DNA of 64,000 nt from Lepidodermella squamata. Its lineage: Eukaryota > Animalia > Gastrotricha. Numbering within the stretch: position 1 is the first letter of the stretch; each line of letters opens with the position of its first letter. The translations under genes and the position numbers were made by a program. Location: the NCBI GenBank assembly GCA_047495785.1, contig JBLDXI010000042.1, forward strand, positions 4,960,001-5,024,000, read 5' to 3'. The notes beneath the pieces are model-generated. The model was given only the letters and a program-made list of their open reading frames with translations. It was not told the origin of the DNA and made no database searches. Positions 1 through 37,062 of this stretch are shown here, one piece after another.

Positions 1-757
1 GCGTTGGGTACGACGGACCGAGCGCTTGGTGTGCTTGCGGCGATGGACCCTCTTGCTGCGATGATGGCGCTTAACCTTCTTCACAGAGCGACGATGACGC
101 TTGGTCGAGCGGGTCTTGCGGCTCACCTTCCTGGAAGTGCGGTGACGGCGAGTCGAGCGAGTCTTGCGTTGGGTACGACGGACCGAGCGCTGGGTGTGCT
201 TGCGGCGATGGACCCTCTTGCTGCGATGATGGCGCTTAACCTTCTTCACAGAGCGACGATGACGCTTGGTCGAGCGGGTCTTGCGGCTCACCTTCCTGGA
301 AGTGCGGTGACGGCGAGTCGAGCGAGTCTTGCGTTGGGTACGACGGACCGAGCGCTTGGTGTGCTTGCGGCGATGGACCCTCTTGCTGCGATGATGGCGC
401 TTAACCTTCTTCACAGAGCGACGATGACGCTTGGTCGAGCGGGTCTTGCGGCTCACCTTCCTGGAAGTGCGGTGACGGCGAGTCGAGCGAGTCTTGCGTT
501 GGGTACGACGGACCGAGCGCTGGGTGTGCTTGCGGCGATGGACCCTCTTGCTGCGATGATGGCGCTTAACCTTCTTCACAGAGCGACGATGACGCTTGGT
601 CGAGCGGGTCTTGCGGCTCACCTTCCTGGAAGTGCGGTGACGGCGAGTCGAGCGAGTCTTGCGTTGGGTACGACGGACCGAGCGCTTGGTGTGCTTGCGG
701 CGATGGACCCTCTTGCTGCGATGATGGCGCTTAACCTTCTTCACAGAGCGACGATGA
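1..757 (-). repeat. 165-bp coding tandem repeat (55 aa, KTRSTRRHRTSRKVSRKTRSTKRHRRSVKKVKRHHRSKRVHRRKHTKRSVRRTQR)
   Basis: GCGTTGGGTACG recurs at 1, 166, 331, 496 and 661; copies are near-identical. Confidence 0.95.
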
Positions 758-3700
758 CGACGAGTTGTGCTCTTACGCTGGCGACGGGTTACATTCTTCG
801 AACGAGAGCGGCGGGTCGAGCGCTTGCTGGTGTGCTTGCGTTGAACCTTTCTGCTCTTGCGAGACCTGTGGGTCTTGCGTTGACGGCGGACCGACTTCTT
901 GGAGCGGGTATGACGAGTGCGCTTGCGTTGGACCTTCCTGCTCTTGCGAGACCTGTGGGTCTTGCGTTGACGGCGGACCGACTTCTTGGAGCGGGTACGA
1001 CGAGTTGTGCTCTTACGCTGGCGACGGGTAACCTTCTTCGAACGAGAGCGGCGGGTCGAGCGCTTGCTGGTGTGCTTGCGTTGAACCTTCCTGCTCTTGC
1101 GAGACCTGTGGGTCTTGCGTTGACGGCGGACCGACTTCTTGGAGCGGGTACGACGAGTGTGCTTGCGTTGGACCTTCCTGCTCTTGCGAGACCTGTGGGT
1201 CTTGCGTTGACGGCGGACCGACTTCTTGGAGCGGGTACGACGAGTTGTGCTCTTACGCTGGCGACGGGTAACCTTCTTCGAACGAGAGCGGCGGGTCGAG
1301 CGCTTGCTGGTGTGCTTGCGTTGAACCTTCCTGCTCTTGCGAGACCTGTGGGTCTTGCGTTGACGGCGGACCGACTTCTTGGAGCGGGTACGACGAGTGT
1401 GCTTGCGTTGGACCTTCCTGCTCTTGCGAGACCTGTGGGTCTTGCGTTGACGGCGGACCGACTTCTTGGAGCGGGTACGACGAGTTGTGCTCTTACGCTG
1501 GCGACGGGTTACCTTCTTCGAACGAGAGCGGCGGGTCGAGCGCTTGCTGGTGTGCTTGCGTTGGACCTTCCTGCTCTTGCGAGACCTGTGGGTCTTGCGT
1601 TGACGGCGGACCGACTTCTTGGAGCGGGTACGACGAGTGCGCTTGCGTTGGACCTTCCTGCTCTTGCGAGACCTGTGGGTCTTGCGTTGACGGCGGACCG
1701 ACTTCTTGGAGCGGGTACGACGAGTTGTGCTCTTACGCTGGCGACGGGTTACCTTCTTCGAACGAGAGCGGCGGGTCGAGCGCTTGCTGGTGTGCTTGCG
1801 TTGAACCTTTCTGCTCTTGCGAGACCTGTGGGTCTTGCGTTGACGGCGGACCGACTTCTTGGAGCGGGTACGACGAGTGCGCTTGCGTTGGACCTTCCTG
1901 CTCTTGCGAGACCTGTGGGTCTTGCGTTGACGGCGGACCGACTTCTTGGAGCGGGTACGACGAGTTGTGCTCTTACGCTGGCGACGGGTTACCTTCTTCG
2001 AACGAGAGCGGCGGGTCGAGCGCTTGCTGGTGTGCTTGCGTTGAACCTTTCTGCTCTTGCGAGACCTGTGGGTCTTGCGTTGACGGCGGACCGACTTCTT
2101 GGAGCGGGTATGACGAGTGCGCTTGCGTTGGACCTTCCTGCTCTTGCGAGACCTGTGGGTCTTGCGTTGACGGCGGACCGACTTCTTGGAGCGGGTATGA
2201 CGAGTGCGCTTGCGTTGGACCTTTCTGCTCTTGCGAGACCTGTGGGTCTTGCGTTGACGGCGGACCGACTTCTTGGAGCGGGTACGACGAGTTGTGCTCT
2301 TACGCTGGCGACGGGTTACCTTCTTCGAACGAGAGCGGCGGGTCGAGCGCTTGCTGGTGTGCTTGCGTTGAACCTTTCTGCTCTTGCGAGACCTGTGGGT
2401 CTTGCGTTGACGGCGGACCGACTTCTTGGAGCGGGTACGACGAGTGCGCTTGCGTTGGACCTTCCTGCTCTTGCGAGACCTGTGGGTCTTGCGTTGACGG
2501 CGGACCGACTTCTTGGAGCGGGTACGACGAGTTGTGCTCTTACGCTGGCGACGGGTTACCTTCTTCGAACGAGAGCGGCGGGTCGAGCGCTTGCTGGTGT
2601 GCTTGCGTTGAACCTTTCTGCTCTTGCGAGACCTGTGGGTCTTGCGTTGACGGCGGACCGACTTCTTGGAGCGGGTATGACGAGTGCGCTTGCGTTGGAC
2701 CTTCCTGCTCTTGCGAGACCTGTGGGTCTTGCGTTGACGGCGGACCGACTTCTTGGAGCGGGTACGACGAGTTGTGCTCTTACGCTGGCGACGGGTTACC
2801 TTCTTCGAACGAGAGCGGCGGGTCGAGCGCTTGCTGGTGTGCTTGCGTTGAACCTTTCTGCTCTTGCGAGACCTGTGGGTCTTGCGTTGACGGCGGACCG
2901 ACTTCTTGGAGCGGGTACGACGAGTGTGCTTGCGTTGGACCTTCCTGCTCTTGCGAGACCTGTGGGTCTTGCGTTGACGGCGGACCGACTTCTTGGAGCG
3001 GGTACGACGAGTGTGCTTGCGTTGGACCTTCCTGCTCTTGCGAGACCTGTGGGTCTTGCGTTGACGGCGGACCGACTTCTTGGAGCGGGTACGACGAGTG
3101 CGCTTGCGTTGGACCTTCCTGCTCTTGCGAGACCTGTGGGTCTTGCGTTGACGGCGGACCGACTTCTTGGAGCGGGTACGACGAGTTGTGCTCTTACGCT
3201 GGCGACGGGTTACCTTCTTCGAACGAGAGCGGCGGGTCGAGCGCTTGCTGGTGTGCTTGCGTTGAACCTTTCTGCTCTTGCGAGACCTGTGGGTCTTGCG
3301 TTGACGGCGGACCGACTTCTTGGAGCGGGTATGACGAGTGCGCTTGCGTTGGACCTTCCTGCTCTTGCGAGACCTGTGGGTCTTGCGTTGACGGCGGACC
3401 GACTTCTTGGAGCGGGTACGACGAGTTGTGCTCTTACGCTGGCGACGGGTTACCTTCTTCGAACGAGAGCGGCGGGTCGAGCGCTTGCTGGTGTGCTTGC
3501 GTTGAACCTTTCTGCTCTTGCGAGACCTGTGGGTCTTGCGTTGACGGCGGACCGACTTCTTGGAGCGGGTATGACGAGTGCGCTTGCGTTGGACCTTCCT
3601 GCTCTTGCGAGACCTGTGGGTCTTGCGTTGACGGCGGACCGACTTCTTGGAGCGGGTACGACGAGTTGTGCTCTTACGCTGGCGACGGGTTACCTTCTTC

Positions 3701-6700
3701 GAACGAGAGCGGCGGGTCGAGCGCTTGCTGGTGTGCTTGCGTTGAACCTTTCTGCTCTTGCGAGACCTGTGGGTCTTGCGTTGACGGCGGACCGACTTCT
3801 TGGAGCGGGTACGACGAGTGTGCTTGCGTTGGACCTTCCTGCTCTTGCGAGACCTGTGGGTCTTGCGTTGACGGCGGACCGACTTCTTGGAGCGGGTACG
3901 ACGAGTGTGCTTGCGTTGGACCTTCCTGCTCTTGCGAGACCTGTGGGTCTTGCGTTGACGGCGGACCGACTTCTTGGAGCGGGTACGACGAGTGCGCTTG
4001 CGTTGGACCTTCCTGCTCTTGCGAGACCTGTGGGTCTTGCGTTGACGGCGGACCGACTTCTTGGAGCGGGTACGACGAGTTGTGCTCTTACGCTGGCGAC
4101 GGGTTACCTTCTTCGAACGAGAGCGGCGGGTCGAGCGCTTGCTGGTGTGCTTGCGTTGAACCTTTCTGCTCTTGCGAGACCTGTGGGTCTTGCGTTGACG
4201 GCGGACCGACTTCTTGGAGCGGGTATGACGAGTGCGCTTGCGTTGGACCTTCCTGCTCTTGCGAGACCTGTGGGTCTTGCGTTGACGGCGGACCGACTTC
4301 TTGGAGCGGGTACGACGAGTTGTGCTCTTACGCTGGCGACGGGTTACCTTCTTCGAACGAGAGCGGCGGGTCGAGCGCTTGCTGGTGTGCTTGCGTTGAA
4401 CCTTTCTGCTCTTGCGAGACCTGTGGGTCTTGCGTTGACGGCGGACCGACTTCTTGGAGCGGGTACGACGAGTGCGCTTGCGTTGGACCTTCCTGCTCTT
4501 GCGAGACCTGTGGGTCTTGCGTTGACGGCGGACCGACTTCTTGGAGCGGGTACGACGAGTTGTGCTCTTACGCTGGCGACGGGTTACCTTCTTCGAACGA
4601 GAGCGGCGGGTCGAGCGCTTGCTGGTGTGCTTGCGTTGAACCTTTCTGCTCTCGCGAGACCTGTGGGTCTTGCGTTGACGGCGGACCGACTTCTTGGAGC
4701 GGGTACGACGAGTTGTGCTCTTACGCTGGCGACGGGTTACCTTCTTCGAACGAGAGCGGCGGGTCGAGCGCTTGCTGGTGTGCTTGCGTTGAACCTTTCT
4801 GCTCTTGCGAGACCTGTGGGTCTTGCGTTGACGGCGGACCGACTTCTTGGAGCGGGTACGACGAGTGTGCTTGCGTTGGACCTTCCTGCTCTTGCGAGAC
4901 CTGTGGGTCTTGCGTTGACGGCGGACCGACTTCTTGGAGCGGGTACGACGAGTGCGCTTGCGTTGGACCTTCCTGCTCTTGCGAGACCTGTGGGTCTTGC
5001 GTTGACGGCGGACCGACTTCTTGGAGCGGGTACGACGAGTTGTGCTCTTACGCTGGCGACGGGTTACCTTCTTCGAACGAGAGCGGCGGGTCGAGCGCTT
5101 GCTGGTGTGCTTGCGTTGAACCTTTCTGCTCTTGCGAGACCTGTGGGTCTTGCGTTGACGGCGGACCGACTTCTTGGAGCGGGTATGACGAGTGCGCTTG
5201 CGTTGGACCTTCCTGCTCTTGCGAGACCTGTGGGTCTTGCGTTGACGGCGGACCGACTTCTTGGAGCGGGTACGACGAGTTGTGCTCTTACGCTGGCGAC
5301 GGGTTACCTTCTTCGAACGAGAGCGGCGGGTCGAGCGCTTGCTGGTGTGCTTGCGTTGAACCTTTCTGCTCTTGCGAGACCTGTGGGTCTTGCGTTGACG
5401 GCGGACCGACTTCTTGGAGCGGGTATGACGAGTGCGCTTGCGTTGGACCTTCCTGCTCTTGCGAGACCTGTGGGTCTTGCGTTGACGGCGGACCGACTTC
5501 TTGGAGCGGGTACGACGAGTTGTGCTCTTACGCTGGCGACGGGTTACCTTCTTCGAACGAGAGCGGCGGGTCGAGCGCTTGCTGGTGTGCTTGCGTTGAA
5601 CCTTTCTGCTCTTGCGAGACCAGTGGGTCTTGCGTTGACGGCGGACCGACTTCTTGGAGCGGGTACGACGAGTGCGCTTGCGTTGGACCTTCCTGCTCTT
5701 GCGAGACCTGTGGGTCTTGCGTTGACGGCGGACCGACTTCTTGGAGCGGGTACGACGAGTTGTGCTCTTACGCTGGCGACGGGTTACCTTCTTCGAACGA
5801 GAGCGGCGGGTCGAGCGCTTGCTGGTGTGCTTGCGTTGTACCTTTCTGCTCTTGCGAGACCTGTGGGTCTTGCGTTGACGGCGGACCGACTTCTTGGAGC
5901 GGGTATGACGAGTGCGCTTGCGTTGGACCTTCCTGCTCTTGCGAGACCTGTGGGTCTTGCGTTGACGGCGGACCGACTTCTTGGAGCGGGTATGACGAGT
6001 TGTGCTCTTACGCTGGCGACGGGTTACCTTCTTCGAACGAGAGCGGCGGGTCGAGCGCTTGCTGGTGTGCTTGCGTTGAACCTTCCTGCTCTTGCGAGAC
6101 CTGTGGGTCTTGCGTTGACGGCGGACCGACTTCTTGGAGCGGGTACGACGAGTGTGCTTGCGTTGGACCTTCCTGCTCTTGCGAGACCTGTGGGTCTTGC
6201 GTTGACGGCGGACCGACTTCTTGGAGCGGGTACGACGAGTTGTGCTCTTACGCTGGCGACGGGTTACCTTCTTCGAACGAGAGCGGCGGGTCGAGCGCTT
6301 GCTGGTGTGCTTGCGTTGAACCTTTCTGCTCTTGCGAGACCAGTGGGTCTTGCGTTGACGGCGGACCGACTTCTTGGAGCGGGTACGACGAGTGCGCTTG
6401 CGTTGGACCTTCCTGCTCTTGCGAGACCTGTGGGTCTTGCGTTGACGGCGGACCGACTTCTTGGAGCGGGTACGACGAGTTGTGCTCTTACGCTGGCGAC
6501 GGGTTACCTTCTTCGAACGAGAGCGGCGGGTCGAGCGCTTGCTGGTGTGCTTGCGTTGTACCTTTCTGCTCTTGCGAGACCTGTGGGTCTTGCGTTGACG
6601 GCGGACCGACTTCTTGGAGCGGGTATGACGAGTGCGCTTGCGTTGGACCTTCCTGCTCTTGCGAGACCTGTGGGTCTTGCGTTGACGGCGGACCGACTTC

Positions 6701-8636
6701 TTGGAGCGGGTATGACGAGTTGTGCTCTTACGCTGGCGACGGGTTACCTTCTTCGAACGAGAGCGGCGGGTCGAGCGCTTGCTGGTGTGCTTGCGTTGAA
6801 CCTCCTGCTCTTGCGAGACCTGTGGTCTTGCGTTGACGGCGGACCGACTTCTTGGAGCGGGTACGACGGGTTGTGCTCTTACGCTGGCGACGGGTTACCT
6901 TCTTCGAACGAGAGCGGCGGGTCGAGCGCTTGCTGGTGTGCTTGCGTTGAACCTTCCTGCTCTTGCGAGACCTGTGGGTCTTGCGTTGACGGCGGACCGA
7001 CTTCTTGGAGCGGGTATGACGAGTGCGCTTGCGTTGGACCTTCCTGCTCTTGCGAGACCTGTGGGTCTTGCTTTGACGGCGGACCGACTTCTTGGAGCGG
7101 GTACGACGGGTTGTGCTCTTACGCTGGCGACGGGTTACCTTCTTCGAACGAGAGCGGTGGGTCGAGCGCTTGCTGGTGTGCTTGCGTTGAACCTTCCTGC
7201 TCTTGCGAGACCTGTGGGTCCCGCTCTTGCGAGTCGAACGGCGAGTCTTGGTGCTCTTGCGGTTCACACGCTTGGTAGACGTACGGCGTGATATTCTTAC
7301 GCTAGCTGATCGCTTAGTGTTTTTCCTTGCGGTTATAACATTTTCCACTCCTAATATGGGGATAAATCAATAATTCCGAGCTCTCGGAGTCATATTATGC
7401 TAATACCGCATGGTTTGCAGCTACAGCTCTGATACTCGTGTACAAAAATGACTGTTTGCCTCTTGTTGCTGCATGTTAACGGGACTCGCTTTGTCTTTGT
7501 GCTGACTCCTTTGCAGCAGTTGCAATTCCTGGTGTTACCGTTATTGGATGTTCCTGACTGGCATTTCCCGCCGCAAACCTGCAGGTTTAAACACATCATA
7601 TCGGATTCCGTTTAGCGTTAATAATTCACTTACAGTAAATTCGACCGGACCACTGCTTTCACATAGTCCATCGGGACTTTTTAATACCTGACGCTCTGTC
7701 TTCAGGCTGCAAGCTGAAATGTGGAATAAACGGATGAATGATGTTACAAGGTGATTCAGAGCAGTAAAGACCTTGTCCGGAAGAGAGGCTTCTAAGCGAA
7801 CGAACTGTGTCGGAGGTTTCAACATCATAGCAGGCGTAGATTTCTGGTGATTTTACAGTGACTTGCTTTCCGGCGGCAGCATCCTTCAAAAGGGAGAGAA
7901 CAGGCTCTGAGCGAGTTGATTCAATGTAAGATAGATGGACTTACAAATGACAGCACGAGCCCAGCAGCGATTTCAGCAGGATTCCACTTGAATCTCAGAG
8001 TGTCCGAGGGTTTCAGATTGCTCTGTTCAACCTCGGCACAAACAGCCTCACCATTGGAGTCGACCAGTTTCAGCCTGGCAGCAGATGCTCCTTCAACAGG
8101 AACGCGAACAAACTTTACGCGAGCGCTGCCACGTGATTTGATCCAAATCGTCAGATTCGCATTGGTGTCGCTTTTGTCGGCACTCCAAAACGTCTGACCA
8201 GGCTTAGCGTCGGAATTCGCTGCGCCAGTAGTACCGTAGGCGAAAAAGTCCTGGAAAAGATTCAATGATGGCTATTTTATGGGTTCCAAATAGGCCTACC
8301 TTTTTCGAAATCAGATCTGTCCATGCGCAGTTCTTCTGAAGCATTCGCTCTCGAACTGTGAATTTATGATGAACGCTATTGAAGGAACCAGTTCATTTCA
8401 GTGCAACACAAGAACTATATATGGTTACCGATGAGTGATGCGGTCCAAAAGACCACGACTGCGCGTACAGTCTTTGGTGCATCCCGGAGGACACTCCTTT
8501 GCAGTGCTATGAAAAATGTAGCGTTGATATTGGTGTTTAATCAGGTGATAAAAACAGCTTACCTTGATGGCAGAGCAGCTAAGCCTGCCACCAGCAAAAC
8601 GGCTGCCCATATAGGGGCCCAGCCGTTTATCCGCAT
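1..8636 (-). CDS. Gene A: secreted protein with signal peptide, discoidin/F5-8C-like domain, cystine-knot (CTCK) domain and a >2400-aa K/R/S/T/H tandem-repeat region; 3' end lies beyond the window
   Basis: Hand-spliced exons 8636-8563, 8506-8429, 8375-8300, 8250-7945, 7883-7772 (alternative donor would extend it to 7748), 7713-7634, 7578-7407 and 7350-<1, all GT-AG and in frame. N-terminus MRINGWAPIWAAVLLVAGLAALPSSTA is signal-peptide-like. CTCK pattern: CESSGPVEFTVCGGKCQSG...NCNCCKGVSTKTKRVPLTC...QSCSCKPC. Two 1-bp deletions near 6803-6825 interrupt the repeat frame. Confidence 0.85.
758..7220 (-). repeat. Coding tandem array of 87-bp and 153-bp subunits, mostly arranged as a 240-bp higher-order repeat
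   Basis: Lines repeat with a 240-bp period (e.g. 961/1201/1441), with occasional extra 87-bp units. Minus-strand translation is RRTRSKKSVRRQRKTHRSRKSRKVQRK(R/H)T... Confidence 0.95.
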
Positions 8637-11203: not shown

Positions 11204-11456
11204 ATGAAGACTACTGATGAACTAGAAAATCATTAGGTCACCGTCAAAAAAACCGATTAATGCGTGCTTCCGACTGAAACAACCAAAACACAAGGAGAAA
11301 ACAGCAAAGTAATGCCAGAGTTTATTGCATAGCCTGCATTGAGTACCGGATAAGTTGAGATTCAAAAACCGGGTTGAGATGTGGACACCGTTACCTTAGG
11401 AGTTACAATGTTATGAACTTTGAAGAAATATAGAATCTTCTGAATAGTTCAACCAC

Positions 11457-14400
11457 TTAATTTGAAGTAATGACCTCCTCCTTGCTGACTTCGACACTAG
11501 ATTCGATTACGGGGCCAACCCAGGTGACGGTCGGAGACGTGACTTCTTCAACGGCACCTTGAATAGTTTCGACCTTAGACTCGACGAGGACGCCGCCAGT
11601 GTTAACAGATGAAGCGTCGGCCTCGACTCCGTTCACGTAAACTTTCGTCTGAGCTTCACCGACAGACACCTTAGTCTCTTCAACAAGATCCGGCTGTTTG
11701 CTTTCCGTAACCTCGACTTTGGGCGCACTAATCCTCTTGGATGAGATGACCTTGCCATCCTCGTCGACTTCCACAGTTTCTTCTTCTACAATTTCCTCCG
11801 GGGGGAGATCAACGACAACAACCTTTGTCTCCTCCACAGTAACTGGGATAACCTGGAAAAAGGAATTTGTTAAGGGAATGGCTGTGGTCAAAAAGGCTCA
11901 CCTCATCTACGACAATAGTGTCGTAAGCATCAGATTCAGTCTCACCCGATGTTGACTGGGAGCTTGAGTGGCGTTTGATAATCTTTGCACCTCCCTTGTG
12001 CTTTCTATGCCTTCTGCGGGAAGACTCAACTTCGACCTCCTCGGTAACTTCCACGTCAGTTTGCTCGCCAGAACGGGTGCGCATGCTTCACATGGGACTT
12101 CGTCTCGGCGGAACGATGCTCGCGACGTTCAACGCGTTTCACGCTCTTGTGGGCGACGCGATTCGACCTTGGAAGCCTCGTGGTGATGAACCAAGCGGGA
12201 GGTTTCCTTACGGGCTGCGCGGTGCTCAACACGTTTCACGCTCTTATTACGCTGATGGGAAACTTGTTTAGCCTCACGACGTTGGGCGACTGCTTTTACG
12301 TTTTCACGCCTCGACTCGATCTTATGTGAAGAACGCCTGATGTCAGACCTTCTTCGACTGCTGTCCACGACGAGATGCTACGTGCCGAGCAACAAATTTG
12401 TGTTCAAGAGATTTCTTGGATTCAGAGCGCCTCGCAGTTGAGCGGCTAGATTGAGATTTCTTTGATTCAGCGCGCTTCGATGAAGAGCGACGTGCGTGGT
12501 GCTTCTTGGATTCGGAGCGCCTTGAAGTAGAACGGCTAGAGTGAGATTTCTTTGATTCAGCGCGCTTCGATGAAGAGCGACGTGCGTGGTGCTTCTTGGA
12601 TTCGGAGCGCCTTGAAGTAGAACGGCTAGATTGAGATTTCTTTGATTCAGCGCGCTTCGATGAAGAGCGACGTGCGTGGTGCTTCTTGGATTCGGAGCGC
12701 CTTGAAGTAGAACGGCTAGAGTGAGATTTCTTTGATTCAGCGCGCTTCGATGAAGAGCGACGTGCGTGGTGCTTCTTGGATTCGGAGCGCCTTGAAGTAG
12801 AACGGCTAGAGTGAGATTTCTTTGATTCAGCGCGCTTCGATGAAGAGCGACGTGCGTGGTGCTTCTTGGATTCGGAGCGCCTTGAAGTAGAACGGCTAGA
12901 GTGAGATTTCTTTGATTCAGCGCGCTTCGATGAAGAGCGACGTGCGTGGTGCTTCTTGGATTCGGAGCGCCTTGAAGTAGAACGGCTAGAGTGAGATTTC
13001 TCAGCGCGCTTCGATGAAGAGCGACGGGCGTGGTGCTTCTCGGAGCGCTTTGAAGTAGAGCGGGTGGAATGGGATTTCTTTGATTCAGAACGGGTGCTAC
13101 GGTGCTTACGGCCATGGCTGGAGCGCTTTGTCGACTTCTTGGAGACGGAAGAACGACGGCTGCGGTGCTTGCGGTGCTTCTTGCTCACAGAGCTGCTGCG
13201 ATGCTTGCGGCTATGACGAGAGCGCCGGGTCGACTTCTTGGAGACGGAGGAGCGACGGCTGCGGTGCTTGCGGTGCTTCTTGCTCACAGAGCTGCTGCGA
13301 TGCTTGCGGCTATGACGAGAGCGCCTGGTCGACTTCTTGGAGACGGAAGAACGACGGCTGCGGTGCTTGCGGTGCTTCTTGCTCACAGAGCTGCTGCCAT
13401 GCTTGCGGCTATGACGAGAGCGCCTGGTCGACTTCTTGGAGACGGAAGAACGACGGCTGCGGTGCTTGCGGTGCTTCTTGCTCACAGAGCTGCTGCGATG
13501 CTTGCGGCTATGACGAGAGCGCCTGGTCGACTTCTTGGAGACGGAAGAACGACGGCTGCGGTGCTTGCGGTGCTTCTTGCTCACAGAGCTGCTGCGATGC
13601 TTGCGGCCATGGCTGGAGCGCTTTGTCGACTTCTTGGAGACGGAAGAACGACGGCTGCGGTGCTTGCGGTGCTTGCGGTGCTTCTTGCTCACAGAGCTGC
13701 TGCGATGCTTGCGGCTATGACGAGAGCGCCTGGTCGACTTCTTGGAGACGGAAGAACGACTGCTGCGGTGCTTGCGGTGCTTCTTGCTCACAGAGCTGCT
13801 GCGATGCTTGCGGCTATGACGAGAGCGCCTGGTCGACTTCTTGGAGACGGAAGAACGACGGCTGCGGTGCTTGCGGTGCTTCTTGCTCACAGAGCTGCTG
13901 CGATGCTTGCGGCTATGACGAGAGCGCCTGGTCGACTTCTTGGAGACGGAAGAACGACGTCTGCGGTGCTTGCGGTGCTTCTTGCTCACAGAGCTGCTGC
14001 GATGCTTGCGGCTATGACGAGAGCGCCTGGTCGACTTCTTGGAGACGGAAGAACGACGGCTGCGGTGCTTGCGGTGCTTCTTGCTCACAGAGCTGCTGCG
14101 ATGCTTGCGGCTATGACGAGAGCGCCTGGTCGACTTCTTGGAGACGGAAGAACGACGGCTGCGGTGCTTGCGGTGCTTCTTGCTCACAGAGGTGCTGCGA
14201 TGCTTGCGGCCATGGCTGGAGCGCTTTGTCGACTTCTTGGAGACGGAGGAGCGACGGCTGCGGTGCTTGCGGTGCTTCTTGCTCACAGAGGTGCTGCTGT
14301 GCTTGCGGCTATGACGAGAGCGCCTGGTCGACTTCTTGGAGACGGAAGAACGACGGCTGCGGTGCTTGCGGTGCTTCTTGCTCACAGAGGTGCTGCTGTG

Positions 14401-16646: not shown

Positions 16647-16725
16647 TCATCGTAAAGTTAAGGACTCTTCGACTTCAACCCATTCAGCGATGGTAACCTC
16701 ATTCGGCTCTTGAATGACCTGAATT
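16647..16725 (-). other. Diverged duplicate of the gene C C-terminal motif (VIQEPNEVTIAEWVEVEES): alternative last exon or relic
   Basis: Nucleotide and peptide similarity to 16982-17040; preceded by candidate AG acceptors (CAAAAG, ATTCAG). Confidence 0.55.
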
Positions 16726-22900: not shown

Positions 22901-25900
22901 GTCTTCCTCACGGAGTGACGACGGCTGCGCTTGTGGCTGCGGGTCTTCCTCACGGAGTGACGACGGCTGCGCTTGTGGTGGCTCTTCTTGGTCGAGCTGG
23001 AGCTGCGCTTGTGGCTGCGGGTCTTCCTCACGGAGTGACCACGGCTGCGCTTGTGGCTGCGGGTCTTCCTCACGGAGTGACGACGGCTGCGCTTGTGGTG
23101 GCTCTTCTTGGTCGAGCTGGAGCGGCGCTTGTGGCTGCGTGTCTTCCTCACGGAGTGACGACGGCTGCGCTTGTGGTGGCTCTTCTTGGTCGAGCTGGAG
23201 CGGCGCTTGTGGCTGCGTGTCTTCCTCACGGAGTGACGACGGCTGCGCTTGTGGTGGCTCTTCTTGGTCGAGCTGGAGCTGCGCTTGTGGCTGCGGGTCT
23301 TCCTCACGGAGTGACGATGGCTGCGCTTGTGGCTGCGGGTCTTCCTCACGGAGTGACGACGGCTGCGCTTGTGGCTGCGGGTCTTCCTCACGGAGTGACC
23401 ACGGCTGCGCTTGTGGCTGCGGGTCTTCCTCACGGAGTGACCACGGCTGCGCTTGTGGTGGCTCTTCTTGGTCGAGCTGGAGCGGCGCTTGTGGCTGCGT
23501 GTCTTCCTCACGGAGTGACGACGGCTGCGCTTGTGGTGGCTCTTCTTGGTCGAGCTGGAGCGGCGCTTGTGGCTGCGTGTCTTCCTCACGGAGTGACGAC
23601 GGCTGCGCTTGTGGTGGCTCTTCTTGGTCGAGCTGGAGCGGCGCTTGTGGCTGCGTGTCTTCCTCACGGAGTGACGATGGCTGCGCTTGTGGCTGCGGGT
23701 CTTCCTCACGGAGTGACGACGGCTGCGCTTGTGGTGGCTCTTCTTGGTCGAGCTGGAGCTGCGCTTGTGGCTGCGGGTCTTCCTCACGGAGTGACGATGG
23801 CTGCGCTTGTGGCTGCGGGTCTTCCTCACGGAGTGACGACGGCTGCGCTTGTGGCTGCGGGTCTTCCTCACGGAGTGACGATGGCTGCGCTTGTGGCTGC
23901 GGGTCTTCCTCACGGAGTGACCACGGCTGCGCTTGTGGTGGCTCTTCTTGGTCGAGCTGGAGCGGCGCTTGTGGCTGCGTGTCTTCCTCACGGAGTGACG
24001 ACGGCTGCGCTTGTGGTGGCTCTTCTTGGTCGAGCTGGAGCGGCGCTTGTGGCTGCGTGTCTTCCCGACGGAGTGACGACGGCTGCGCTTGTGGTGGCTC
24101 TTCTTGGTCGAGCTGGAGCGGCGCTTGTGGCTGCGGGTCTTCCCGACGGAGTGACGACGGCTGCGCTTGTGGCTGCGGGTCTTCCTCACGGAGTGACGAC
24201 GGCTGCGCTTGTGGTGGCTCTTCTTGGTCGAGCTGGAGCTGCGCTTGTGGCTGCGGGTCTTCCTCACGGAGTGACGACGTCTGCGCTTGTGGCTGCGGGT
24301 CTTCCTCACGGAGTGACGACGGCTGCGCTTGTGGTGGCTCTTCTTGGTCGAGCTGGAGCGGCGCTTGTGGCTGCGGGTCTTCCTCACGGAGTGACGACGG
24401 CTGCGCTTGTGGTGGCTCTTCTTGGTCGAGCTGGAGCGGCGCTTGTGGCTGCGGGTCTTCCTCACGGAGTGACGACGGCTGCGCTTGTGGCTGCGGGTCT
24501 TCCTCACGGAGTGACGACGGCTGCGCTTGTGGTGGCTCTTCTTGGTCGAGCTGGAGCTGCGCTTGTGGCTGCGGGTCTTCCTCACGGAGTGACCACGGCT
24601 GCGCTTGTGGCTGCGGGTCTTCCTCACGGAGTGACGACGGCTGCGCTTGTGGTGGCTCTTCTTGGTCGAGCTGGAGCGGCGCTTGTGGCTGCGTGTCTTC
24701 CTCACGGAGTGACGACGGCTGCGCTTGTGGTGGCTCTTCTTGGTCGAGCTGGAGCGGCGCTTGTGGCTGCGTGTCTTCCTCACGGAGTGACGACGGCTGC
24801 GCTTGTGGTGGCTCTTCTTGGTCGAGCTGGAGCTGCGCTTGTGGCTGCGGGTCTTCCTCACGGAGTGACGATGGCTGCGCTTGTGGCTGCGGGTCTTCCT
24901 CACGGAGTGACGACGGCTGCGCTTGTGGCTGCGGGTCTTCCTCACGGAGTGACCACGGCTGCGCTTGTGGCTGCGGGTCTTCCTCACGGAGTGACCACGG
25001 CTGCGCTTGTGGTGGCTCTTCTTGGTCGAGCTGGAGCGGCGCTTGTGGCTGCGTGTCTTCCTCACGGAGTGACGACGGCTGCGCTTGTGGTGGCTCTTCT
25101 TGGTCGAGCTGGAGCGGCGCTTGTGGCTGCGTGTCTTCCTCACGGAGTGACGACGGCTGCGCTTGTGGTGGCTCTTCTTGGTCGAGCTGGAGCGGCGCTT
25201 GTGGCTGCGGGTCTTCCTCACGGAGTGACGACGGCTGCGCTTGTGGTGGCTCTTCTTGGTCGAGCTGGAGCGGCGCTTGTGGCTGCGGGTCTTCCTCACG
25301 GAGTGACGACGGCTGCGCTTGTGGTGGCTCTTCTTGGTCGAGCTGGAGCTGCGCTTGTGGCTGCGGGTCTTCCTCACGGAGTGACGACGGCTGCGCTTGT
25401 GGCTGCGGGTCTTCCTCACGGAGTGACGACGGCTGCGCTTGTGGTGGCTCTTCTTGGTCGAGCTGGAGCTGCGCTTGTGGCTGCGGGTCTTCCTCACGGA
25501 GTGACGATGGCTGCGCTTGTGGCTGCGGGTCTTCCTCACGGAGTGACGACGGCTGCGCTTGTGGCTGCGGGTCTTCCTCACGGAGTGACCACGGCTGCGC
25601 TTGTGGCTGCGGGTCTTCCTCACGGAGTGACCACGGCTGCGCTTGTGGTGGCTCTTCTTGGTCGAGCTGGAGCGGCGCTTGTGGCTGCGTGTCTTCCTCA
25701 CGGAGTGACGACGGCTGCGCTTGTGGTGGCTCTTCTTGGTCGAGCTGGAGCGGCGCTTGTGGCTGCGTGTCTTCCTCACGGAGTGACGACGGCTGCGCTT
25801 GTGGTGGCTCTTCTTGGTCGAGCTGGAGCGGCGCTTGTGGCTGCGGGTCTTCCTCACGGAGTGACGACGGCTGCGCTTGTGGTGGCTCTTCTTGGTCGAG

Positions 25901-26745
25901 CTGGAGCGGCGCTTGTGGCTGCGGGTCTTCCTCACGGAGTGACGACGGCTGCGCTTGTGGTGGCTCTTCTTGGTCGAGCTGGAGCTGCGCTTGTGGCTGC
26001 GGGTCTTCCTCACGGAGTGACGACGGCTGCGCTTGTGGCTGCGGGTCTTCCTCACGGAGTGACGACGGCTGCGCTTGTGGTGGCTCTTCTTGGTCGAGCT
26101 GGAGCGGCGCTTGTGGCTGCGGGTCTTCCTCACGGAGTGACGACGGCTGCGCTTGTGGCCGCTCGATCTTGCATGTCTCCTCGCAGAGCGACTGTAATAG
26201 AGGGATGTCAGTACTTTCTCTTAACGATGAAATCATGAGAGGCAAGCTTTTTCCTATGTAAGGAAATTTTTCTCATAACATTGTATTACACATTATAAGG
26301 GGGACCCTTATTATTATCCCCTTTCGGCAATGTCCATATTCTACACTGCAAGTTAATTAAGGTAAAGGACTCGGCTCTATTAGAGATATTTATGACCACG
26401 CTGACTTGCGGAGGGGTTAATATAAGTGGCCTTGTATTACGCGCTTTCTCTGTACATAATAGCATACTCACGTGTTAACCGGTCCTCGACGAGGTGTTAT
26501 TTCGAATTCACGTAGAATGTCCATGAGACATTTTATTTCTTCGCTGCAGTTTTCGCAGCCGTTTTCCTGATTTTCAACACTCCTGGTGAGTTTCCCCAGC
26601 AAAGAGCTGTTTTCATTCCGCCGATGGGACCTGATAAAGAGAGTAACAGTAAAAAAGCTTTTCCTTGGCGAACTTTTTACCTGGAGGCTGCTAAGGCTGC
26701 AACTGAGATTACAACGGCTGCAAAAAGCAGCCACTTAGAAGCCAT
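16982..26745 (-). CDS. Gene C: secreted giant R/K/H/S-repeat protein with Ser-rich region and acidic QEPDEVTITEW tail (about 2650 aa; longer if the duplicated segment is spliced in)
   Basis: Exons 26745-26681 (MASKWLLFAAVVISVAALAAS), 26630-26472 (GCENCSEEIKCLMDILREFEITPRRGPVN), 26191-20519, 20465-20370, 19001-17280 and 17225-16982. All introns are phase-2 GT-AG and the total of 7959 nt is a multiple of 3. Confidence 0.85.
17350..18250 (-). repeat. 51/60/69-bp coding repeats (SETRQKSAGKSV(Q/K)...)
   Basis: Recurrent CCTGCAGA(C/T)TTCTGACG motif in the penultimate exon of gene C. Confidence 0.9.
19162..20314 (-). repeat. Tandem duplication (1153-bp offset) of the 3' end of gene C's giant exon, the following intron, the 96-bp exon and part of the next intron
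   Basis: The non-repetitive part, 19162-19570, matches 20315-20723. The junction is at CGGGT|CATAAT. Confidence 0.9.
20725..26160 (-). repeat. Coding array of 42-bp (TRSHKRSRRHSVRK) and 78-bp (TRSHKRRSSSTKKSHHKRSRRHSVRK) units with higher-order blocks
   Basis: Directly visible. Rare variants (HSVGK, RRRRH, SRGH) recur in the same order in several blocks. Confidence 0.95.
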
Positions 26746-28407: not shown

Positions 28408-31400
28408 TCAAGCCTGGACTTCTTCTGTCCACTCGGTAACAATGACCTGGTCGGGTTCCTGGTGAACAGTATCGAAATACTCGACAGAATACTCGACTCC
28501 GTCATCGCTTGATCCACCATCAGAGCTGTTGGCGCTCGCGGAGCTCGATGAAGCAGAAGAGTGGCGAGAAGTACCCTTGCTGCGCCTAACTCCGGTCTTT
28601 GAAGACTTTCTCACGACCCTTCAATTAGAAACAGCAATAAATTACTTTAATTGTGACATCAAAAAGTCACCTTCGGCTGGAAGTCTTCTTTCCGCTGCGG
28701 ACAGAGCTTCTGCTTCTAGAATGGCTGGACCTGATGCCAACGGGATGGTGAGTTAATGTTAATATCTGAAATTTGAAAGCATGCAGCCTTACCGCCTCGA
28801 TGAGCTGCCATGGCTCGATGACGCAGAAGAGTGACGAGCAGTACCCTTGGAATGGCCGTGCCTAACTCCGGTCTCTGAAGACTTGCTCACGACCCTTAAT
28901 TTAGAAACAGCAATCACTTATGTGCATGCAACGTGACATCAAAAAGTCACCTGTGGCCGGAAGACTTCTTTTCGCTGCGGACAGAGCTGCTTCCGGAATG
29001 GCTAGACCTGATGTCATGACGATAATAGGTTGAAAATCTTTGAAAGTGTGCGAATTTTGAAAACATGCAGTCTTACCGCCTAGATGATGATGAATGACCG
29101 CGAGACGCAGACCTCCTGACTTTGTGAACTGTGCGGCGGCGATGAGAGCGCGTGGACCGGCTAGTGACGCGCTTCCTAGCGGTTCTGCGACGCCTAAAAA
29201 TAATTACAGAGATAATTACTCTCAGCGTTGACTTTGAAACCAACTTGTGACGGGAGCGGCGCGTAATCTTCCGGCGAGAGCTATTTTTGCCTGAGGAGCT
29301 GCGAGAGTGGGAGATTGCTGAACGATTGGAAACAGAGTGGCCACGGATCTGAGAGCTGGCGTGCTTCGAATGAGAACGACGAGAAAGCGCAGCTCCCGTG
29401 TGACGGGACTGACGAGAGTGGGAGCGTTTAACAATCTCAGTAGAGGAACGGCGATGATGACGACGGCTTGTGGTGACGCGCTTGGTCGAATGGCTAAGAG
29501 CGTATGAAGAATAACAATCATTTGACAGCTTTCGCAGAAGCAACTTACAGTTTCCTCGAACGGCTAGATGACGTGCGAGAATGGTGACGGCTCTTCACAG
29601 AGCGATGGCTGCGGCGGTGGCTCTTCTTGCCCTTGCGAACTGAGCGACGAGAACGGCGGTGGGAGCGCTTTCCATGACGGCTCTTCACAGAGCGATGGCT
29701 GCGGCGGTGGCTCTTCTTGCCCTTGCGAACTGAGCGACGAGAATGGCGGTGGGTGCGCTTTCCATGACGGCTCTTCACAGAGCGATGGCTGCGGCGGTGG
29801 CTCTTCTTGCCCTTGCGAACTGAGCGACGAGAACGGCGGTGGGAGCGCTTTCCATGACGGCTCTTCACAGAGCGATGGCTGCGGCGGTGGCTCTTCTTGC
29901 CCTTGCGAACTGAGCGACGAGAACGGCGGTGGGTGCGCTTTCCATGACGGCTCTTCAAAGAGCGATGGCTGCGGCGGTGCGTGCGCTTTCCATGACGGCT
30001 CTTCACAGAGCGATGGCTGCGGCGGTGGCTCTTCTTGCCCTTGCGAACTGAGCGACGAGAACGGCGGTGGGTGCGCTTTCCATGACGGCTCTTCACAGAG
30101 CGATGGCTGCGGCGGTGGGTGCGCTTTCCATGACGGCTCTTCACAGAGCGATGGCTGCGGCGGTGGCTCTTCTTGCCCTTGCGAACTGAGCGACGAGAAC
30201 GGCGGTGGGTGCGCTTTCCATGACGGCTCTTCAAAGAGCGATGGCTGCGGCGGTGCGTGCGCTTTCCATGACGGCTCTTCACAGAGCGATGGCTGCGGCG
30301 GTGGCTCTTCTTGCCCTTGCGAACTGAGCGACGAGAATGGCGGTGGGTGCGCTTTCCATGACGGCTCTTCACAGAGCGATGGCTGCGGCGGTGGCTCTTC
30401 TTGCCCTTGCGAACTGAGCGACGAGAACGGCGGTGGGAGCGCTTTCCATGACGGCTCTTCACAGAGCGATGGCTGCGGCGGTGGCTCTTCTTGCCCTTGC
30501 GAACTGAGCGACGAGAACGGCGGTGGGTGCGCTTTCCATGATGGCTCTTCACAGAGCGATGGCTGCGGCGGTGGCTTTTCTTGCCCTTGCGAACTGAGCG
30601 ACGAGAACGGCGGTGGGAGCGCTTTCCATGACGGCTCTTCACAGAGCGATGGCTGCGGCGGTGGCTCTTCTTGCCCTTGCGAACTGAGCGACGAGAACGA
30701 CGGTGGGTGCGCTTTCCATGACGGCTCTTCACAGAGCGATGGCTGCGGCGGTGGGTGCGCTTTCCATGACGGCTCTTCACAGAGCGATGGCTGCGGCGGT
30801 GGCTCTTCTTGCCCTTGCGAACTGAGCGACGAGAACGACGGTGGATGCGCTTTCCATGACGGCTCTTCACAGAGCGATGGCTGCGGCGGTGGCTCTTCTT
30901 ACCCTTGCGAACTGAGCGACGAGAACGGCGGTGGGAGCGCTTTCCATGACGGCTCTTCACAGAGCGATGGCTGCGGCGGTGGCTCTTCTTGCCCTTGCGA
31001 ACTGAGCGACGAGAACGGCGGTGGGAGCGCTTTCCATGACGGCTCTTCACAGAGCGATGGCTGCGGCGGTGGGTGCGCTTTCCATGACGGCTCTTCACAG
31101 AGCGATGGCTGCGGCGGTGGCTCTTCTTGCCCTTGCGAACTGAGCGACGAGAACGGCGGTGGGTGCGCTTTCCATGACGGCTCTTCACAGAGCGATGGCT
31201 GCGGCGGTGGCTCTTCTTGCCCTTGCGAACTGAGCGACGAGAACGGCGGTGGGAGCGCTTTCCATGACGGCTCTTCACAGAGCGATGGCTGCGGCGGTGG
31301 CTCTTCTTGCCCTTGCGAACTGAGCGACGAGAACGGCGGTGGGAGCGCTTTCCATGACGGCTCTTCACAGAGCGATGGCTGCGGCGGTGGCTCTTCTTGC

Positions 31401-33328
31401 CCTTGCGAACTGAGCGACGAGAACGGCGGTGGGTGCGCTTTCCATGACGGCTCTTCACAGAGCGATGGCTGCGGCGGTGGGTGCGCTTTCCATGACGGCT
31501 CTTCACAGAGCGATGGCTGCGGCGGTGGCTCTTCTTGCCCTTGCGAACTGAGCGACGAGAACGGCGGTGGGTGCGCTTTCCATGATGGCTCTTCACAGAG
31601 CGATGGCTGCGGCGGTGGCTCTTCTTGCCCTTGCGAACTGAGCGACGAGAACGGCGGTGGGTGCGCTTTCCATGACGGCTCTTCACAGAGCGATGGCTGC
31701 GGCGGTGGCTCTTCTTGCCCTTGCGAACTGAGCGACGAGAACGGCGGTGGGAGCGCTTTCCATGACGGCTCTTCACAGAGCGATGGCTGCGGCGGTGGCT
31801 CTTCTTGCCCTTGCGAACTGAGCGACGAGTACGGAGGTGGGAGCGCTTTCCATGACGGCTCTTCACAGAGCGATGGCTGCGGCGGTGGGTGCGCTTTCCA
31901 TGACGGCTCTTCACAGAGCGATGGCTGTGGCGGTGGGTGCGCTTTCCATGACGGCTCTTCACAGAGCGATGGCTGCGGCGGTGGCTCTTCTTGCCCTTGC
32001 GAACTGAGCGACGAGAACGGCGGTGGGTGCGCTTTCCATGACGGCTCTTCACAGAGCGATGGCTGCGGCGGTGGGTGCGCTTTCCATGACGGCTCTTCAC
32101 AGAGCGATGGCTGCGGCGGTGGCTCTTCTTGCCCTTGCGAACTGAGCGACGAGAACGGCGGTGGGTGCGCTTTCCATGATGGCTCTCCACAGAGCGATGG
32201 CTGCGGCGGTGGGTGCGCTTTCCATGACGGCTCTTCACAGAGCGATGGCTGCGGCGGTGGCTCTTCTTGCCCTTGCGGACTGAGCGACGAGAACGGCGGT
32301 GGGAGGTCACGCGGCTGCTCACTGAGCCACGTGTTGCTGCACGCCTATTCTTCCGTACTGTTCGGCTGTGATTAAAAACAGCGCATTACGGTTAAACCAC
32401 ATAGAACATCATCTTAAAAACAGCCCTCTTATATATTTGTATGTTATGACATGGGTAAAAAGTTTAGATGTGAACGATTTACGAAAACGGCACGTCTTTG
32501 TCGGCAGTTTTATGTCCTTTGCAGTGCCGCCTTGTATTTGAATTTCAACGGTTACCTTTTTCTACCCTAGTATTTTGAATAGAGACGACGAACTCCATCA
32601 CCAGAAAAAAAATCACCCTAATTTGGGTGATAAAAAATCGGACTTTTAGCTTGTGAAATCCCCTCAATTAGGGCCCTGTGAGTATCCTAATTCACGGATT
32701 TTCAACATTTATCTGAATTCATGCCCAAAATCACCCTAATTCATGTACAAAAATGCAGTTATTTATCTACTGAAAGCATGAATTCAGATACCGAAACTAA
32801 ATTCATGCTTTCGGTAGATAAATTCGTGTGATATTTTTTCTGGTGATAGAATATGAAGAAATAGAGACGATATATTAAGAATTCTCCTCAGCCTTCTATG
32901 AATTATACTTTCGAAGTTGTAGATGTTGATTTTAATCGGGGTTGTACACTTTAAGGAAGGATTATAAGGTTCTACATTTTCAATGATCTACGTCTTCCAC
33001 TAGCTCTAATCTCCAAGACTGTAATTTCACCAACCTGTTAACTGGTTGTCTTGGCCTGATCTCGAAATTGTTCAAAAGCTTTATAAAGCATTGTATTTCT
33101 TTGCTGCATCCTGCGCAGCTGCTATCTGAGTCTTCCGAGTTTCGCACAGCAATGGAACGCGTCAAATGACGGCTTAGGGGTCCAAGATTAGATTCAACCC
33201 TGGAAAAAATGCAAATAGTAGTAGTAGCCCAATATGTTCGAAAATATGAATGTAGCGAACCTTGCTTCCGTTGCAACCGCCGCGGCAACGGCGATTACGA
33301 CAGCTAATACGAGCTGTCGCGATACCAT
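28408..33328 (-). CDS. Gene D: secreted R/K/H/S-repeat protein, paralog of gene C, with acidic QEPDQVIVTEW tail (about 1280 aa)
   Basis: Exons 33328-33261 (MVSRQLVLAVVIAVAAAVATEA), 33199-33035 (SCAGCSKEIQCFIKLLNNFEIRPRQPVN), 32365-29549, 29493-29245, 29193-29077, 29007-28951, 28894-28793, 28730-28671 and 28618-28408. All introns are phase 2, the total of 3846 nt is a multiple of 3, and there is AATAAA at 28301-28306. Confidence 0.85.
29585..32303 (-). repeat. 90-bp coding repeat (30 aa, RRSRRSVRKGKKSHRRSHRSVKSRHGKRTH) with extra 48-bp subunits
   Basis: Directly visible tandem array; 15 of 30 residues are K/R and 4 of 30 are H. Confidence 0.95.
32597..32847. mobile_element. Small MITE in intron 2 of gene D
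   Basis: Terminal inverted repeats ATCACCAGAAAAAA / TTTTTTCTGGTGAT and an internal hairpin at 32761-32824. Confidence 0.6.
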
Positions 33329-33419: not shown

Positions 33420-33428
33420 CTTTTATAC
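33420..33428 (-). promoter_or_regulatory. Putative TATA box of gene D
   Basis: GTATAAAAG about 95 nt upstream of the ATG at 33328. Confidence 0.5.
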
Positions 33429-34859: not shown

Positions 34860-34985
34860 AGGAGCACGTGGCTTAGTGGTTAAGCGTCCGCTGTGCTTTC
34901 TCTGAAGGTCAGTGGTTCGCCTCCAAGTCACGGCGCGTGTGTAACTGAGCAGAGCACTTAACCCCTACTGCTCCGGCTGGGTGGC
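34860..34985 (+). mobile_element. tRNA-derived SINE (5' part)
   Basis: A box TGGCTTAGTGG, B-box-like GGTTCGCCTCC, then GAGCAGAGCACTTAACCCC. A second, similar copy lies at about 38089-38195. Confidence 0.7.
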
Positions 34986-35280
34986 AGAAACAAATAATGT
35001 CTTTGAAATTCTAAAAGAAATAAGTATGATGAAGTTCAAGTTGGGCTGCTCCGCCAACATAAAACAAGTGAACCTGGGAAAGGTTCCTTGCGTCAGGTAT
35101 ATGTTGGTGCACAATGTTGGTGTAATTCTAGATTTTCAAATTTTATTCAAATTAAATTCAATTTAATTTCGTCGACATTGCGATAGCAGGATCAAGTCGA
35201 CACCAATATAACACTACCGATGTTTTATTAATTAAATATTCTCAATAGCTCATAGCGTTTGAGTTAAGATTCCCCGCTAA

Positions 35281-37062
35281 TTACCGCCACCTGGTTAAAT
35301 AGGATAATTAAATCACTGAGAACCGGATCGCTCAGGTCATTTTTACTTCTTAGCAGCAACTTTGAATAAAGTTGGAAGCTTTGTACTAGCGCCCTGCTGG
35401 CTCTTGGACTGCGGCGCAGGTTTGCCAGCGTTTGAATTAACTGTTTTCTGGCCAGATGCGTTTGTCTCAGCTCGACGATTTCTCCACGTCCACGGGGCAT
35501 ACCAGCGGACTCCTGAATCAGCCGAACGCGTCTGGGTAGCTGGCTTCTTCGAGTCATCTTCAGCCCTTGACCAAAACCACCAGCTCCTACGACGAGGCGC
35601 GGCCTTGGCGGGTGTGACACCAGCGCTTCTACGTTGGTAGCGACGATGCTTCCTGTGCCTCTTTGATTTGCCGTTGCTCTGAGTCACAGTATTACCCGAT
35701 TTCTTAGCAGCAGCACTCTTTCTGCGGAACCACGAACGCTTCTTTCGTTGCTGCTTTGTCGGAGTACCAGTTACATTTTTGCGGTTCTTACGAAACCAAC
35801 GCCTCCTATGCCTTCTCTTCTGCGCACCAGCAGTTACGCCGGCATTAGCACTCCGCTGGCTACGGCGCCTGCCCCACCGCCTGTAAGCAGGTTTTGCTTG
35901 GGCCGTATTGGTCTTAGCTGCACTCCTGGCGACAACGGAAGACTTCTTTGCAGGGCCAGAGCTCTTAGCAGCAACGGCCTTGGGTGCAGTCGCAGCTTGC
36001 TTTTTCACAGCAACAGGCTTGCTAGCAGTATTCTTTACAGCAACTGGCTTCTTTGCCACAGCTGCGGGTTTGCCGGCAGCGGAATTCTTCGAAGCAGCAG
36101 GCTTCCTTTTCTGGACCTTCGCAGCGGTCCTTGCAGGCTTCTTCGCAGCAACTGGCTTCTTCGTCTCTACGCTCTTAGCTGCAACAGCTTTCGGAGCTGT
36201 TTGAACTGGTTTCTTAGCAGCAGCTTGGTTGCTTAAAGCTACAACTGTCTTAGTTTGAACCGACTTGCCAGAATCGGCTTTTTTCGTCGCCACGGCGGTC
36301 TTCTTCGCGGCAGCAGGCTTTTTCTTAGCTGCAGTCTTGGCCGGTTTCTTAGCTGAGACTGGTTTGCCAGATCCTGAGCTCTTGGCAGCCACTGTGTTTG
36401 AAGACTTCACGGCCACTGTCTTCTTGCTCTGGGCCTGTTTGGCGAGAGCAGCCTGCGAAGTCTCCGAACCCTTAGCTGCTACTTTACCAGAAGAAGTCTT
36501 GCTATAAAAATGCCAAAAATACACGATTTCCTCAAGTTTTACCTATCATAAATACCTATTTTTCACAGCACGGGGTTTACGCTGGTTACGGGTGCGCCTC
36601 CTACGCTGCTTGCGAACTGCACCCTTGGAATTCGCAGATCGATTCTGGACCGTCTTGGTGTTACTATTAAAAAATACTGCCTAAACCATGAATTAAAACC
36701 GAGCGGACTTACGTCTGGGAGGCAGATCTCTTGCTAATTAGTTATCAAAACAAAAAGCAGTTGCATACTAAAAGCTATAAGAAATTCAAGCTCGAGTCTT
36801 ACCTAGCAGCTGCATTTTTGCGATGACGCCGACGCCTCTGCTTTCGCTGGGCCTTCTTCGGTGGAGCTTTCTTGGTTTCAGCGGCTTTCACTGTTTTGCC
36901 GTTGCCAGCTTTCTTGACATCAGCAGCCTTCGGCTTAGTTTCGACGGGTGACTTCTTTGCAGGAGCTTTCGCCTCATTTTTCTTCTCAACCGGTGCAGCT
37001 GAGGCCGCAACAATTGCAAACAGCACAACGGCTGCGCAACCTAGGTAAAACCACCTGGTCAT
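35281..37062 (-). CDS. Gene E: secreted Lys/Ala/Pro-rich (histone H1-like) protein with Trp/Arg-rich motifs (about 517 aa)
   Basis: Exons 37062-36803 (MTRWFYLGCAAVVLFAIVAASA), 36733-36713 (21-bp microexon), 36663-36556, 36501-35347 and a probable last exon 35290-35281 (otherwise the stop is at 35343). Introns are phase 2; AATAAA at about 35224-35229. Confidence 0.85.

Follow-up and report, generated by a model that had tools for sequence, protein, structure and literature searches.

Giant secreted polycations encoded by a gene cluster of the gastrotrich Lepidodermella squamata: candidate cohesive proteins of a temporary glue

For what purpose would a gastrotrich export giant proteins made largely of lysine and arginine? 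The question is raised by a stretch of 64,000 nucleotides (nt) from contig JBLDXI010000042.1 of Lepidodermella squamata (the window; all positions are counted along it), in which the minus strand of the left 37 kb carries five genes, A to E, with hand-built splice models. The published assembly of this species comprises 122 Mb in 157 contigs with 43% GC and was obtained from amplified single-animal DNA (PMC11660948). By analogy with the flatworm adhesive protein ap3 and the Lys/Arg-rich (K/R) regions of ap1, we consider it an even bet that B, C and D, with A as a probable fourth, supply the gastrotrich temporary glue with secreted cohesive polycations.

The introns of the five models all have GT-AG ends and measure mostly 49-73 nt. 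In each protein the N-terminal stretch is the hydrophobic maximum, with an 11-residue Kyte-Doolittle mean of 2.8-3.7 against at most 1.9 elsewhere, and the signal peptides were called from this hydropathy together with the splice models. An earlier note on this DNA had proposed five co-oriented minus-strand genes with signal peptides, and both the GT-AG models and the hydrophobic maxima bear it out. The first intron of A-D is in phase 2 and is located directly behind the signal peptide. A TATA-like box was present 64-100 nt upstream of B-D and a poly(A) signal 102-131 nt downstream of B-E; the frequency of upstream TGACG motifs was not above background, and the Rfam search gave no match.

The array blocks of this region are GC-rich and strand-skewed. 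The periods of all seven arrays are multiples of 3, with the exception of one 151-nt row at a frameshift, and a long minus-strand open frame rich in Arg, Lys, Ser and His runs over each of them. It is these frames that the minus-strand arrays carry, and the view that the plus-strand open reading frames are antisense shadows holds. Among the variants between repeat copies, 18 of 43 left the amino acid of the K/R frame unchanged, where about 24.5% would be expected to do so (p=0.009); the best alternative frame gave 15 of 43 (p=0.13), and significance was reached in the K/R frame only. The main arrays contain 44-54% Lys plus Arg (K+R), 5-16% His, no Cys, no Pro and no aromatic residues except one Trp in the 2265-residue body of A, while in the arrays Gly amounts to 0-6.5% and Ser to 16-38%. 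The first description of this composition stood with regard to Cys and Pro; its K+R range of about 40-50% had to be raised (54% in A), the Trp of A had been missed, and acidic residues, said to occur in one array of B only, were also found in the second array of C (Glu 4.6%, K+R only 24%). The net charge of A-D ranges from +333 to over +1200; the main arrays carry about +0.45 per residue, and the ends of B-D are negative. Array copy numbers are only approximate, because the assembly has single-base errors in B and a probable false duplication in C.

Gene B (11457..15080, minus strand; exons 15080-15025, 14974-11902 and 11852-11457) encodes 1173 amino acids (aa) with a net charge of +333. The order is signal peptide, Cys motif, a 99-nt array (13095-14841), a 90-nt array (12413-13088) and a Val/Glu-rich acidic tail of 145 aa. 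Read contigs were compared over 7240-12410 only, where two runs, one probably RNA and one DNA, cover 7300-12400. The RNA contigs cover the last two exons of B and its 3' untranslated region deeply and skip the intron 11853-11901, which has GT-AG ends on the minus strand; of the junctions that the earlier note wished to see confirmed, this one is spliced as predicted, and no signal-peptide exon was confirmed by RNA. Three extra bases of the window, at 12075, 12151 and 12348, are absent from RNA and DNA contigs alike, which makes B an intact 1173-aa gene and the frameshifts assembly errors. A 28-nt intron considered for the frame break was rejected for the same assembly error. The 5' exons of A had no RNA contig cover within 7240-12410, which says little because they lie more than 8 kb from the 3' end of A and contigs show presence only.

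Gene C (16982..26745, minus strand; exons 26745-26681, 26630-26472, 26191-20519, 20465-20370, 19001-17280 and 17225-16982) encodes about 2650 aa without a duplicated block, with a net charge of about +965. It is composed of signal peptide, a CxxC-x6-C module, two arrays, a Gly/Ser linker and an acidic tail. The duplicated block is a tandem duplication of 1153 nt (19161..20313), in which 19161-20214 is identical to 20314-21367 over 1054 bases, introns included; it is probably an amplification or assembly artefact. The junction within 19161-21367 has short shared sequence, with the look of an amplification chimera. A partial second copy of the last coding stretch of C, 86% identical, lies behind an AG 280 nt downstream of its stop (16637..16717, minus strand) and may be a remnant or an alternative last exon. 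Gene D (28408..33328, minus strand) has nine exons, a clean reading frame of 1281 aa, a net charge of +498 and a layout like that of C; its array (29585-32303) contains 48% K+R and 15% His. Among its final small exons (28408-29076) there are two duplicated exon-intron pairs with similar introns. Ahead of the arrays, no in-frame start codon is present in the repeat exons of C and D. Both acidic tails contain 31-35% Asp+Glu and the motif QEPD-x-V-xx-TEW.

Do these genes form one family, as had been claimed? The alignment of C with D was clear for the N-terminal CxxC-x6-C helix modules (z=14.6) and for the acidic tails (z=6.4), and judged by their sequences C and D are the only proven paralogue pair. 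B has the same layout order with a longer Val/Glu tail, and its Cys motif matches only marginally (p about 0.06); it is a likely paralogue of C and D. The arrays have almost no peptide words in common and their DNA matches are short only, which indicates that they expanded separately. As far as sequence comparison reaches, A-E do not form one family, and their supposed co-expression is conjectural.

The nearest known proteins were found among flatworm adhesives. Mlig-ap1 of Macrostomum lignano is a secreted, cohesive protein with more than 3600 aa of K/R regions, and heparin prevents the attachment that it mediates (PMC6410801). A proseriate and a polyclad have the K/R regions as a protein of their own, ap3; that of the species coded Tmed consists of 3700 aa, with a signal peptide and a K/R/G/H/S share of 87.7% (PMC9229212), and the knock-down of Mile-ap3 led to the loss of the dense core of the adhesive vesicles (PMC6745481). 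Genes of ap1 type are kept in freshwater flatworms. In the gastrotrich group of L. squamata adhesive tubes are fed by glands (PMC5034412), and gastrotrichs are placed close to flatworms (PMC6468455); meiofaunal adhesive organs have been treated as convergent (PMC4016567).

Fragments of Mile-ap3a and Mile-ap3b, translated from the supplement of PMC6745481, consist of a signal peptide, a Cys-rich module, GRK repeats, a Gly/Ser linker and an acidic Trp tail. This five-part order is that of C and D, and B largely matches it. The Gly/Ser linker and short acidic Trp tail are present in C and D; the tail of B is longer, E has none, and the end of A lies beyond the window. The tail acidity of Mile-ap3 is 33%, against 35% and 31% in C and D, and the spacing P-x5-T-x-W is common to the three tails, although it was chosen after looking and arises in 1-2% of shuffles. 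Tmed-ap3 is likewise a stand-alone secreted giant polycation, with 52% K+R and 12% His, close to the arrays of A-D; its 88% of K/R/G/H/S compares with 73-82% in B, C and D, and in both cases the body is of low complexity and without folded domains. Mlig-ap1 resembles the cluster in having giant K/R repeats in a secreted cohesive protein, and two published primers for it translate to acidic Trp-containing peptides, a hint of a similar acidic stretch somewhere in that protein. Since Mile-ap3 and Tmed-ap3 are already described, to call the cluster an undescribed system was an overstatement: stand-alone secreted giant K/R/G/H/S polycations are known from flatworm glue. The adhesive or structural role put forward at first is plausible, and it gains from the gastrotrich host and from the ap3 layout, a protein that the earlier note had not named.

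In the glue that we favour, the signal peptide would route the chain to secretory granules. Each later step is inferred from what was observed, namely gene structures, export signals, composition and the transcription of B. Disulfide dimers or oligomers would then form through the N-terminal Cys motif and its amphipathic helix in B-D and through the cystine knot in A. The disordered polycation of 800 to more than 2400 residues could pack densely in the granule, its charge being offset in part by counter-ions and its own acidic tail, and His would add sensitivity to pH or metals. Once released, the polycation would hold the glue together by binding through charge to polyanions such as the glycocalyx, a glycosylated partner protein, biofilm or mineral surfaces, and release would follow from competition by another polyanion, as has been suggested for flatworms. 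The beta-sandwich of A may bind glycans. The strong representation of B in the RNA contigs is consistent with this picture.

Several results weigh against it. Among the gene parts inside the compared range, RNA was seen for B only. None of the ap1 core domains (C-type lectin, vWD, C8, TIL, EGF), which Mlig-ap1 has, was found in any A-E model. The repeats of Tmed-ap3 are rich in Gly (15.7%) and those of the cluster are poor in it and rich in Ser. The ends of Mile-ap3, used as the flatworm sequence in the tests of terminal homology, gave p=0.38-0.85 against shuffles for the tails and p=0.2-1.0 for the N-termini, in pairwise as well as hidden Markov model scores. Other differences are of the same kind. 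The filler residue of ap3 is Gly, instead of Ser/Thr/Val in the arrays of A-D, and the Gly-rich GRK motif does not occur in them; the Cys-rich module of ap3 corresponds to three Cys and a helix in B-D; the Mile-ap3 tail is rich in Tyr/Trp and the tails here in Val/Ile/Thr; and ap3 is one gene where here there is a cluster of several. An eye-catching tail match to Mile-ap3b failed the shuffle tests, and a database search with the Mile-ap3b tail gave no match. As neither terminus aligns above composition, homology to ap3 is unproven and B-D were not filed as ap3 members; by their layout, they probably work like ap3. The stronger claim, that the cluster is gastrotrich glue and that B-D share an ancestral gene with flatworm ap3/ap1 and have ends diverged beyond alignment, seems doubtful to us.

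Gene A (1..8636, minus strand) runs past the left edge of the window, with exons 8636-8563, 8506-8429, 8375-8300, 8250-7945, 7883-7772, 7713-7634, 7578-7407 and 7350-<1. Here the signal peptide is followed by a small Cys segment, a beta-sandwich, a cystine knot and then R/K/S/T repeats that exceed 2400 aa; between signal peptide and repeats, the folded domains with their Cys span about 275 residues. The repeat exon (1..7350) holds 87/240-nt units at 757-7108 and 165-nt units at 1-759. Its frame is shifted near 6825 and near 6803, where a single base is missing from each of two short runs, probably through an assembly error like those in B. The Cys-bounded all-beta domain (7820..8330; residues 67-196, with approximate boundaries) had a predicted structure made only of strands, of low confidence (predicted local distance difference test 54). 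Structure matches of this low-confidence model included modules of the CBM32, DOC and fucose-binding types, which at Z 5-6 were not decisive and ranked below an unrelated top match at Z 7.8, and Pfam gave no match for the domain; the tentative reading is a discoidin/galactose-binding-like sandwich.

The knot (7407..7713) is of the von Willebrand factor (vWF)/mucin CTCK type. It has 11 Cys, at residues 217, 233, 244, 248, 261, 263, 264, 278, 294, 296 and 299, with the CxGxC, CxCC and CxC spacing. When one exon of it was searched, the best PDB match was the vWF CTCK (E=0.011); the Pfam matches to DAN and Cys_knot were weak, with scores under the cut-off. The likeness to vWF and gel-forming mucins lies in this knot behind a probable discoidin-like sandwich. 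Unlike in those proteins, the knot is near the N-terminus, a giant polycation comes after it, and there is no vWD, TIL or TSP1 domain and no Pro/Thr/Ser mucin tract. The C-terminal end of Mlig-ap2 also has, in our reading, a cystine-knot-like Cys pattern.

A search of 1.84 billion proteins yielded one true homologue of gene A, P0005, the other matches being weak repeat or immunoglobulin-like noise. Two metagenome scans, one with the beta-domain and one with the knot, gave no matches, and the ESM Atlas searches no usable lead. The gene of P0005 sits on animal contigs in ENA metagenome assemblies (L001:6572-8020). Its order is like that of A: signal peptide, beta-domain, knot, and then an 86-residue tract with 43% His, 21% Lys and 9% Arg, ended by a Cys motif and a predicted helix (L001:7800-8020). 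The two proteins agree in 31% of 227 aligned residues (score 336, against at most 62 in shuffles), the two introns of P0005 coincide with introns of A in place and phase, and the alignment backs the frame of the exon 3-4 junction of A. In P0005 the knot and the His/Lys tract lie within one exon, which supports a single secreted chain. The layout of beta-sandwich, cystine knot and polycation is thus kept in a second animal, and it matches no described protein that was found. The fetched flanks of the P0005 gene contained no B-D-like gene, and the comparison of its C-terminal Cys motif and helix with the N-terminal Cys motif of B (p=0.012 among 21 comparisons) failed correction. The same host carries an intronless PI4KA of 2098 aa (L001:9653-15949) without a close relative in the database; it is 42-49% identical to many animal phyla alike, and the host is a fast-evolving, intron-poor, unsampled animal.

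Gene E (35343..37062, minus strand; three exons) encodes 508 aa with a net charge of +128. It has a signal peptide, a Lys/Ala-rich composition like that of histone H1 and Arg/Trp clusters; Pro and Trp are present, and it lacks both tandem array and acidic tail. No Pfam match was obtained, including none to a winged-helix domain. In the C-terminal third (35400-35900) Arg clusters stand beside Trp/Phe, like in cell-penetrating or antimicrobial peptides. By its sequence E is a separate basic secreted protein, unrelated to A-D. Its signal peptide and basic tract share one exon, and this, together with the exon of P0005, supports the early claim that the polycations are secreted.

Could the same features serve another purpose? 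Gastrotrichs secrete a proteinaceous cuticle and egg shells, and the proteins might be the structural matrix of cuticle or scales, egg shell or mucus coat, condensing with acidic proteins or glycans and hardening at their His tracts via metal or cross-links. We regard this as the main alternative, though less likely than a glue. The export signal, the oligomerising Cys motifs and the charge blocks fit it equally; the strong RNA signal of B, in a run presumably of whole animals, suits a bulk product; the beta-sandwich and knot of A are a mucin-type toolkit, and P0005 has a short tract with 43% His, not a giant one. What speaks for a glue is that the arrays lack Tyr, Gly (0-6.5%) and Cys, the usual cross-linkers of tanned shells, and that the five-part layout is that of a proven glue protein; no paper on gastrotrich cuticle or egg-shell proteins was found.

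It is unlikely that the proteins are surface-defence polycations or precursors of antimicrobial peptides, whose repeats convertases would cut into peptides that bind bacteria or protect the cuticle from biofilm. In favour of this stand the antimicrobial action of protamine and histatin, 0.8-2.4 furin-type R-x-K/R-R sites per 100 residues and a very high density of dibasic sites; however, at 40-50% K+R chance would be expected to produce such sites, and the units have no spacer-and-core layout. Hydrophobic residues make up just 6-11%, nearly all of them Val, so that no amphipathic face results, and the disulfide-linking N-termini suit long uncut chains.

A nuclear role, as protamine-like or sperm chromatin proteins starting downstream of the supposed signal exons, we hold to be very improbable. 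Taken alone, the repeat composition would suit it: A-D share Arg/Lys/Ser/His with protamines and other sperm nuclear basic proteins, E shares Lys/Ala/Pro with histone H1 tails, and no signal-exon junction was seen in RNA. Unlike such proteins, the cluster shows signal peptides, disulfide modules and a 10- to 50-fold greater length (508 to >2700 aa). The signal peptide is found in five of five genes, followed directly in A-D by the phase-2 intron; C and D offer no start codon before their arrays, E joins signal and basic tract in one exon, and A has a disulfide knot that in P0005 shares its exon with the basic tract. The reading of the arrays as satellite DNA or artefacts of amplification, or of the plus-strand frames as the real genes, is largely refuted and hardly credible: the assembly does come from amplified single-animal DNA, with single-base errors proven at three places in B, a duplication in C that is probably false and copy numbers that may be off, and long plus-strand open frames do exist, but unit lengths in multiples of 3, a synonymous excess confined to the K/R frame, clean multi-exon frames, minus-strand splicing in RNA and a conserved orthologue of A with introns in common argue for genes on the minus strand.

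Taking the glue as the preferred reading, these genes, three of them with ap3-like layouts, would be the first candidate molecules found for gastrotrich glue; no paper naming a gastrotrich adhesive protein was found in the mostly open-access literature searched. If descent from a common gene were true, the adhesive glands of gastrotrichs and flatworms would have inherited a common charge-based glue chemistry, contrary to the view of independent origin, and gene A would stand for a type not yet described, a glycan-binding polycation dimerised by its knot. The unique N- and C-terminal ends provide probes in a culturable species, with which shared versus independent origin becomes testable. Either outcome would be informative: common ancestry of the glue, or independent arrival at a layout of signal peptide, Cys linker, giant polycation and acidic tail. 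Sandcastle worm cement contains the secreted basic repeat proteins Pc1 and Pc2, thought to coacervate with a polyanion; these are small and rich in Gly and Tyr, the latter as dihydroxyphenylalanine (DOPA), in contrast to the arrays of A-D without Tyr. A freshwater, DOPA-free, charge-based adhesive would be of interest for biomaterials work.

Between A and B, at 9835-11200, there are one or more high-copy repeated elements, probably a non-autonomous transposon, at which many divergent DNA contigs pile up with opposite-strand joints. To the right of the cluster, two short palindromic blocks of 13-15-nt AT-rich repeats lie about 400 nt apart (38615-39202). Tandem divergent genes for rhodopsin-type G protein-coupled receptors (GPCRs) occupy 43105-52020 (47004-47951 and 50728-52020), with related orphan frames in between at 44649 and 49618. 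An exact search with a GPCR of the window yielded no annotated record, and a search with a transporter fragment no homologue. At 52861-54736 a SUEL-lectin-like segment with Cys precedes a long Ser/Thr-rich frame of a single-pass membrane protein, and a guanylate/adenylate cyclase gene with several exons lies at 55092-57697 on the minus strand. Finally, at 59783-63903 a concentrative nucleoside transporter on the plus strand is convergent with an apparently intronless class C (GABA-B-like) GPCR on the minus strand.

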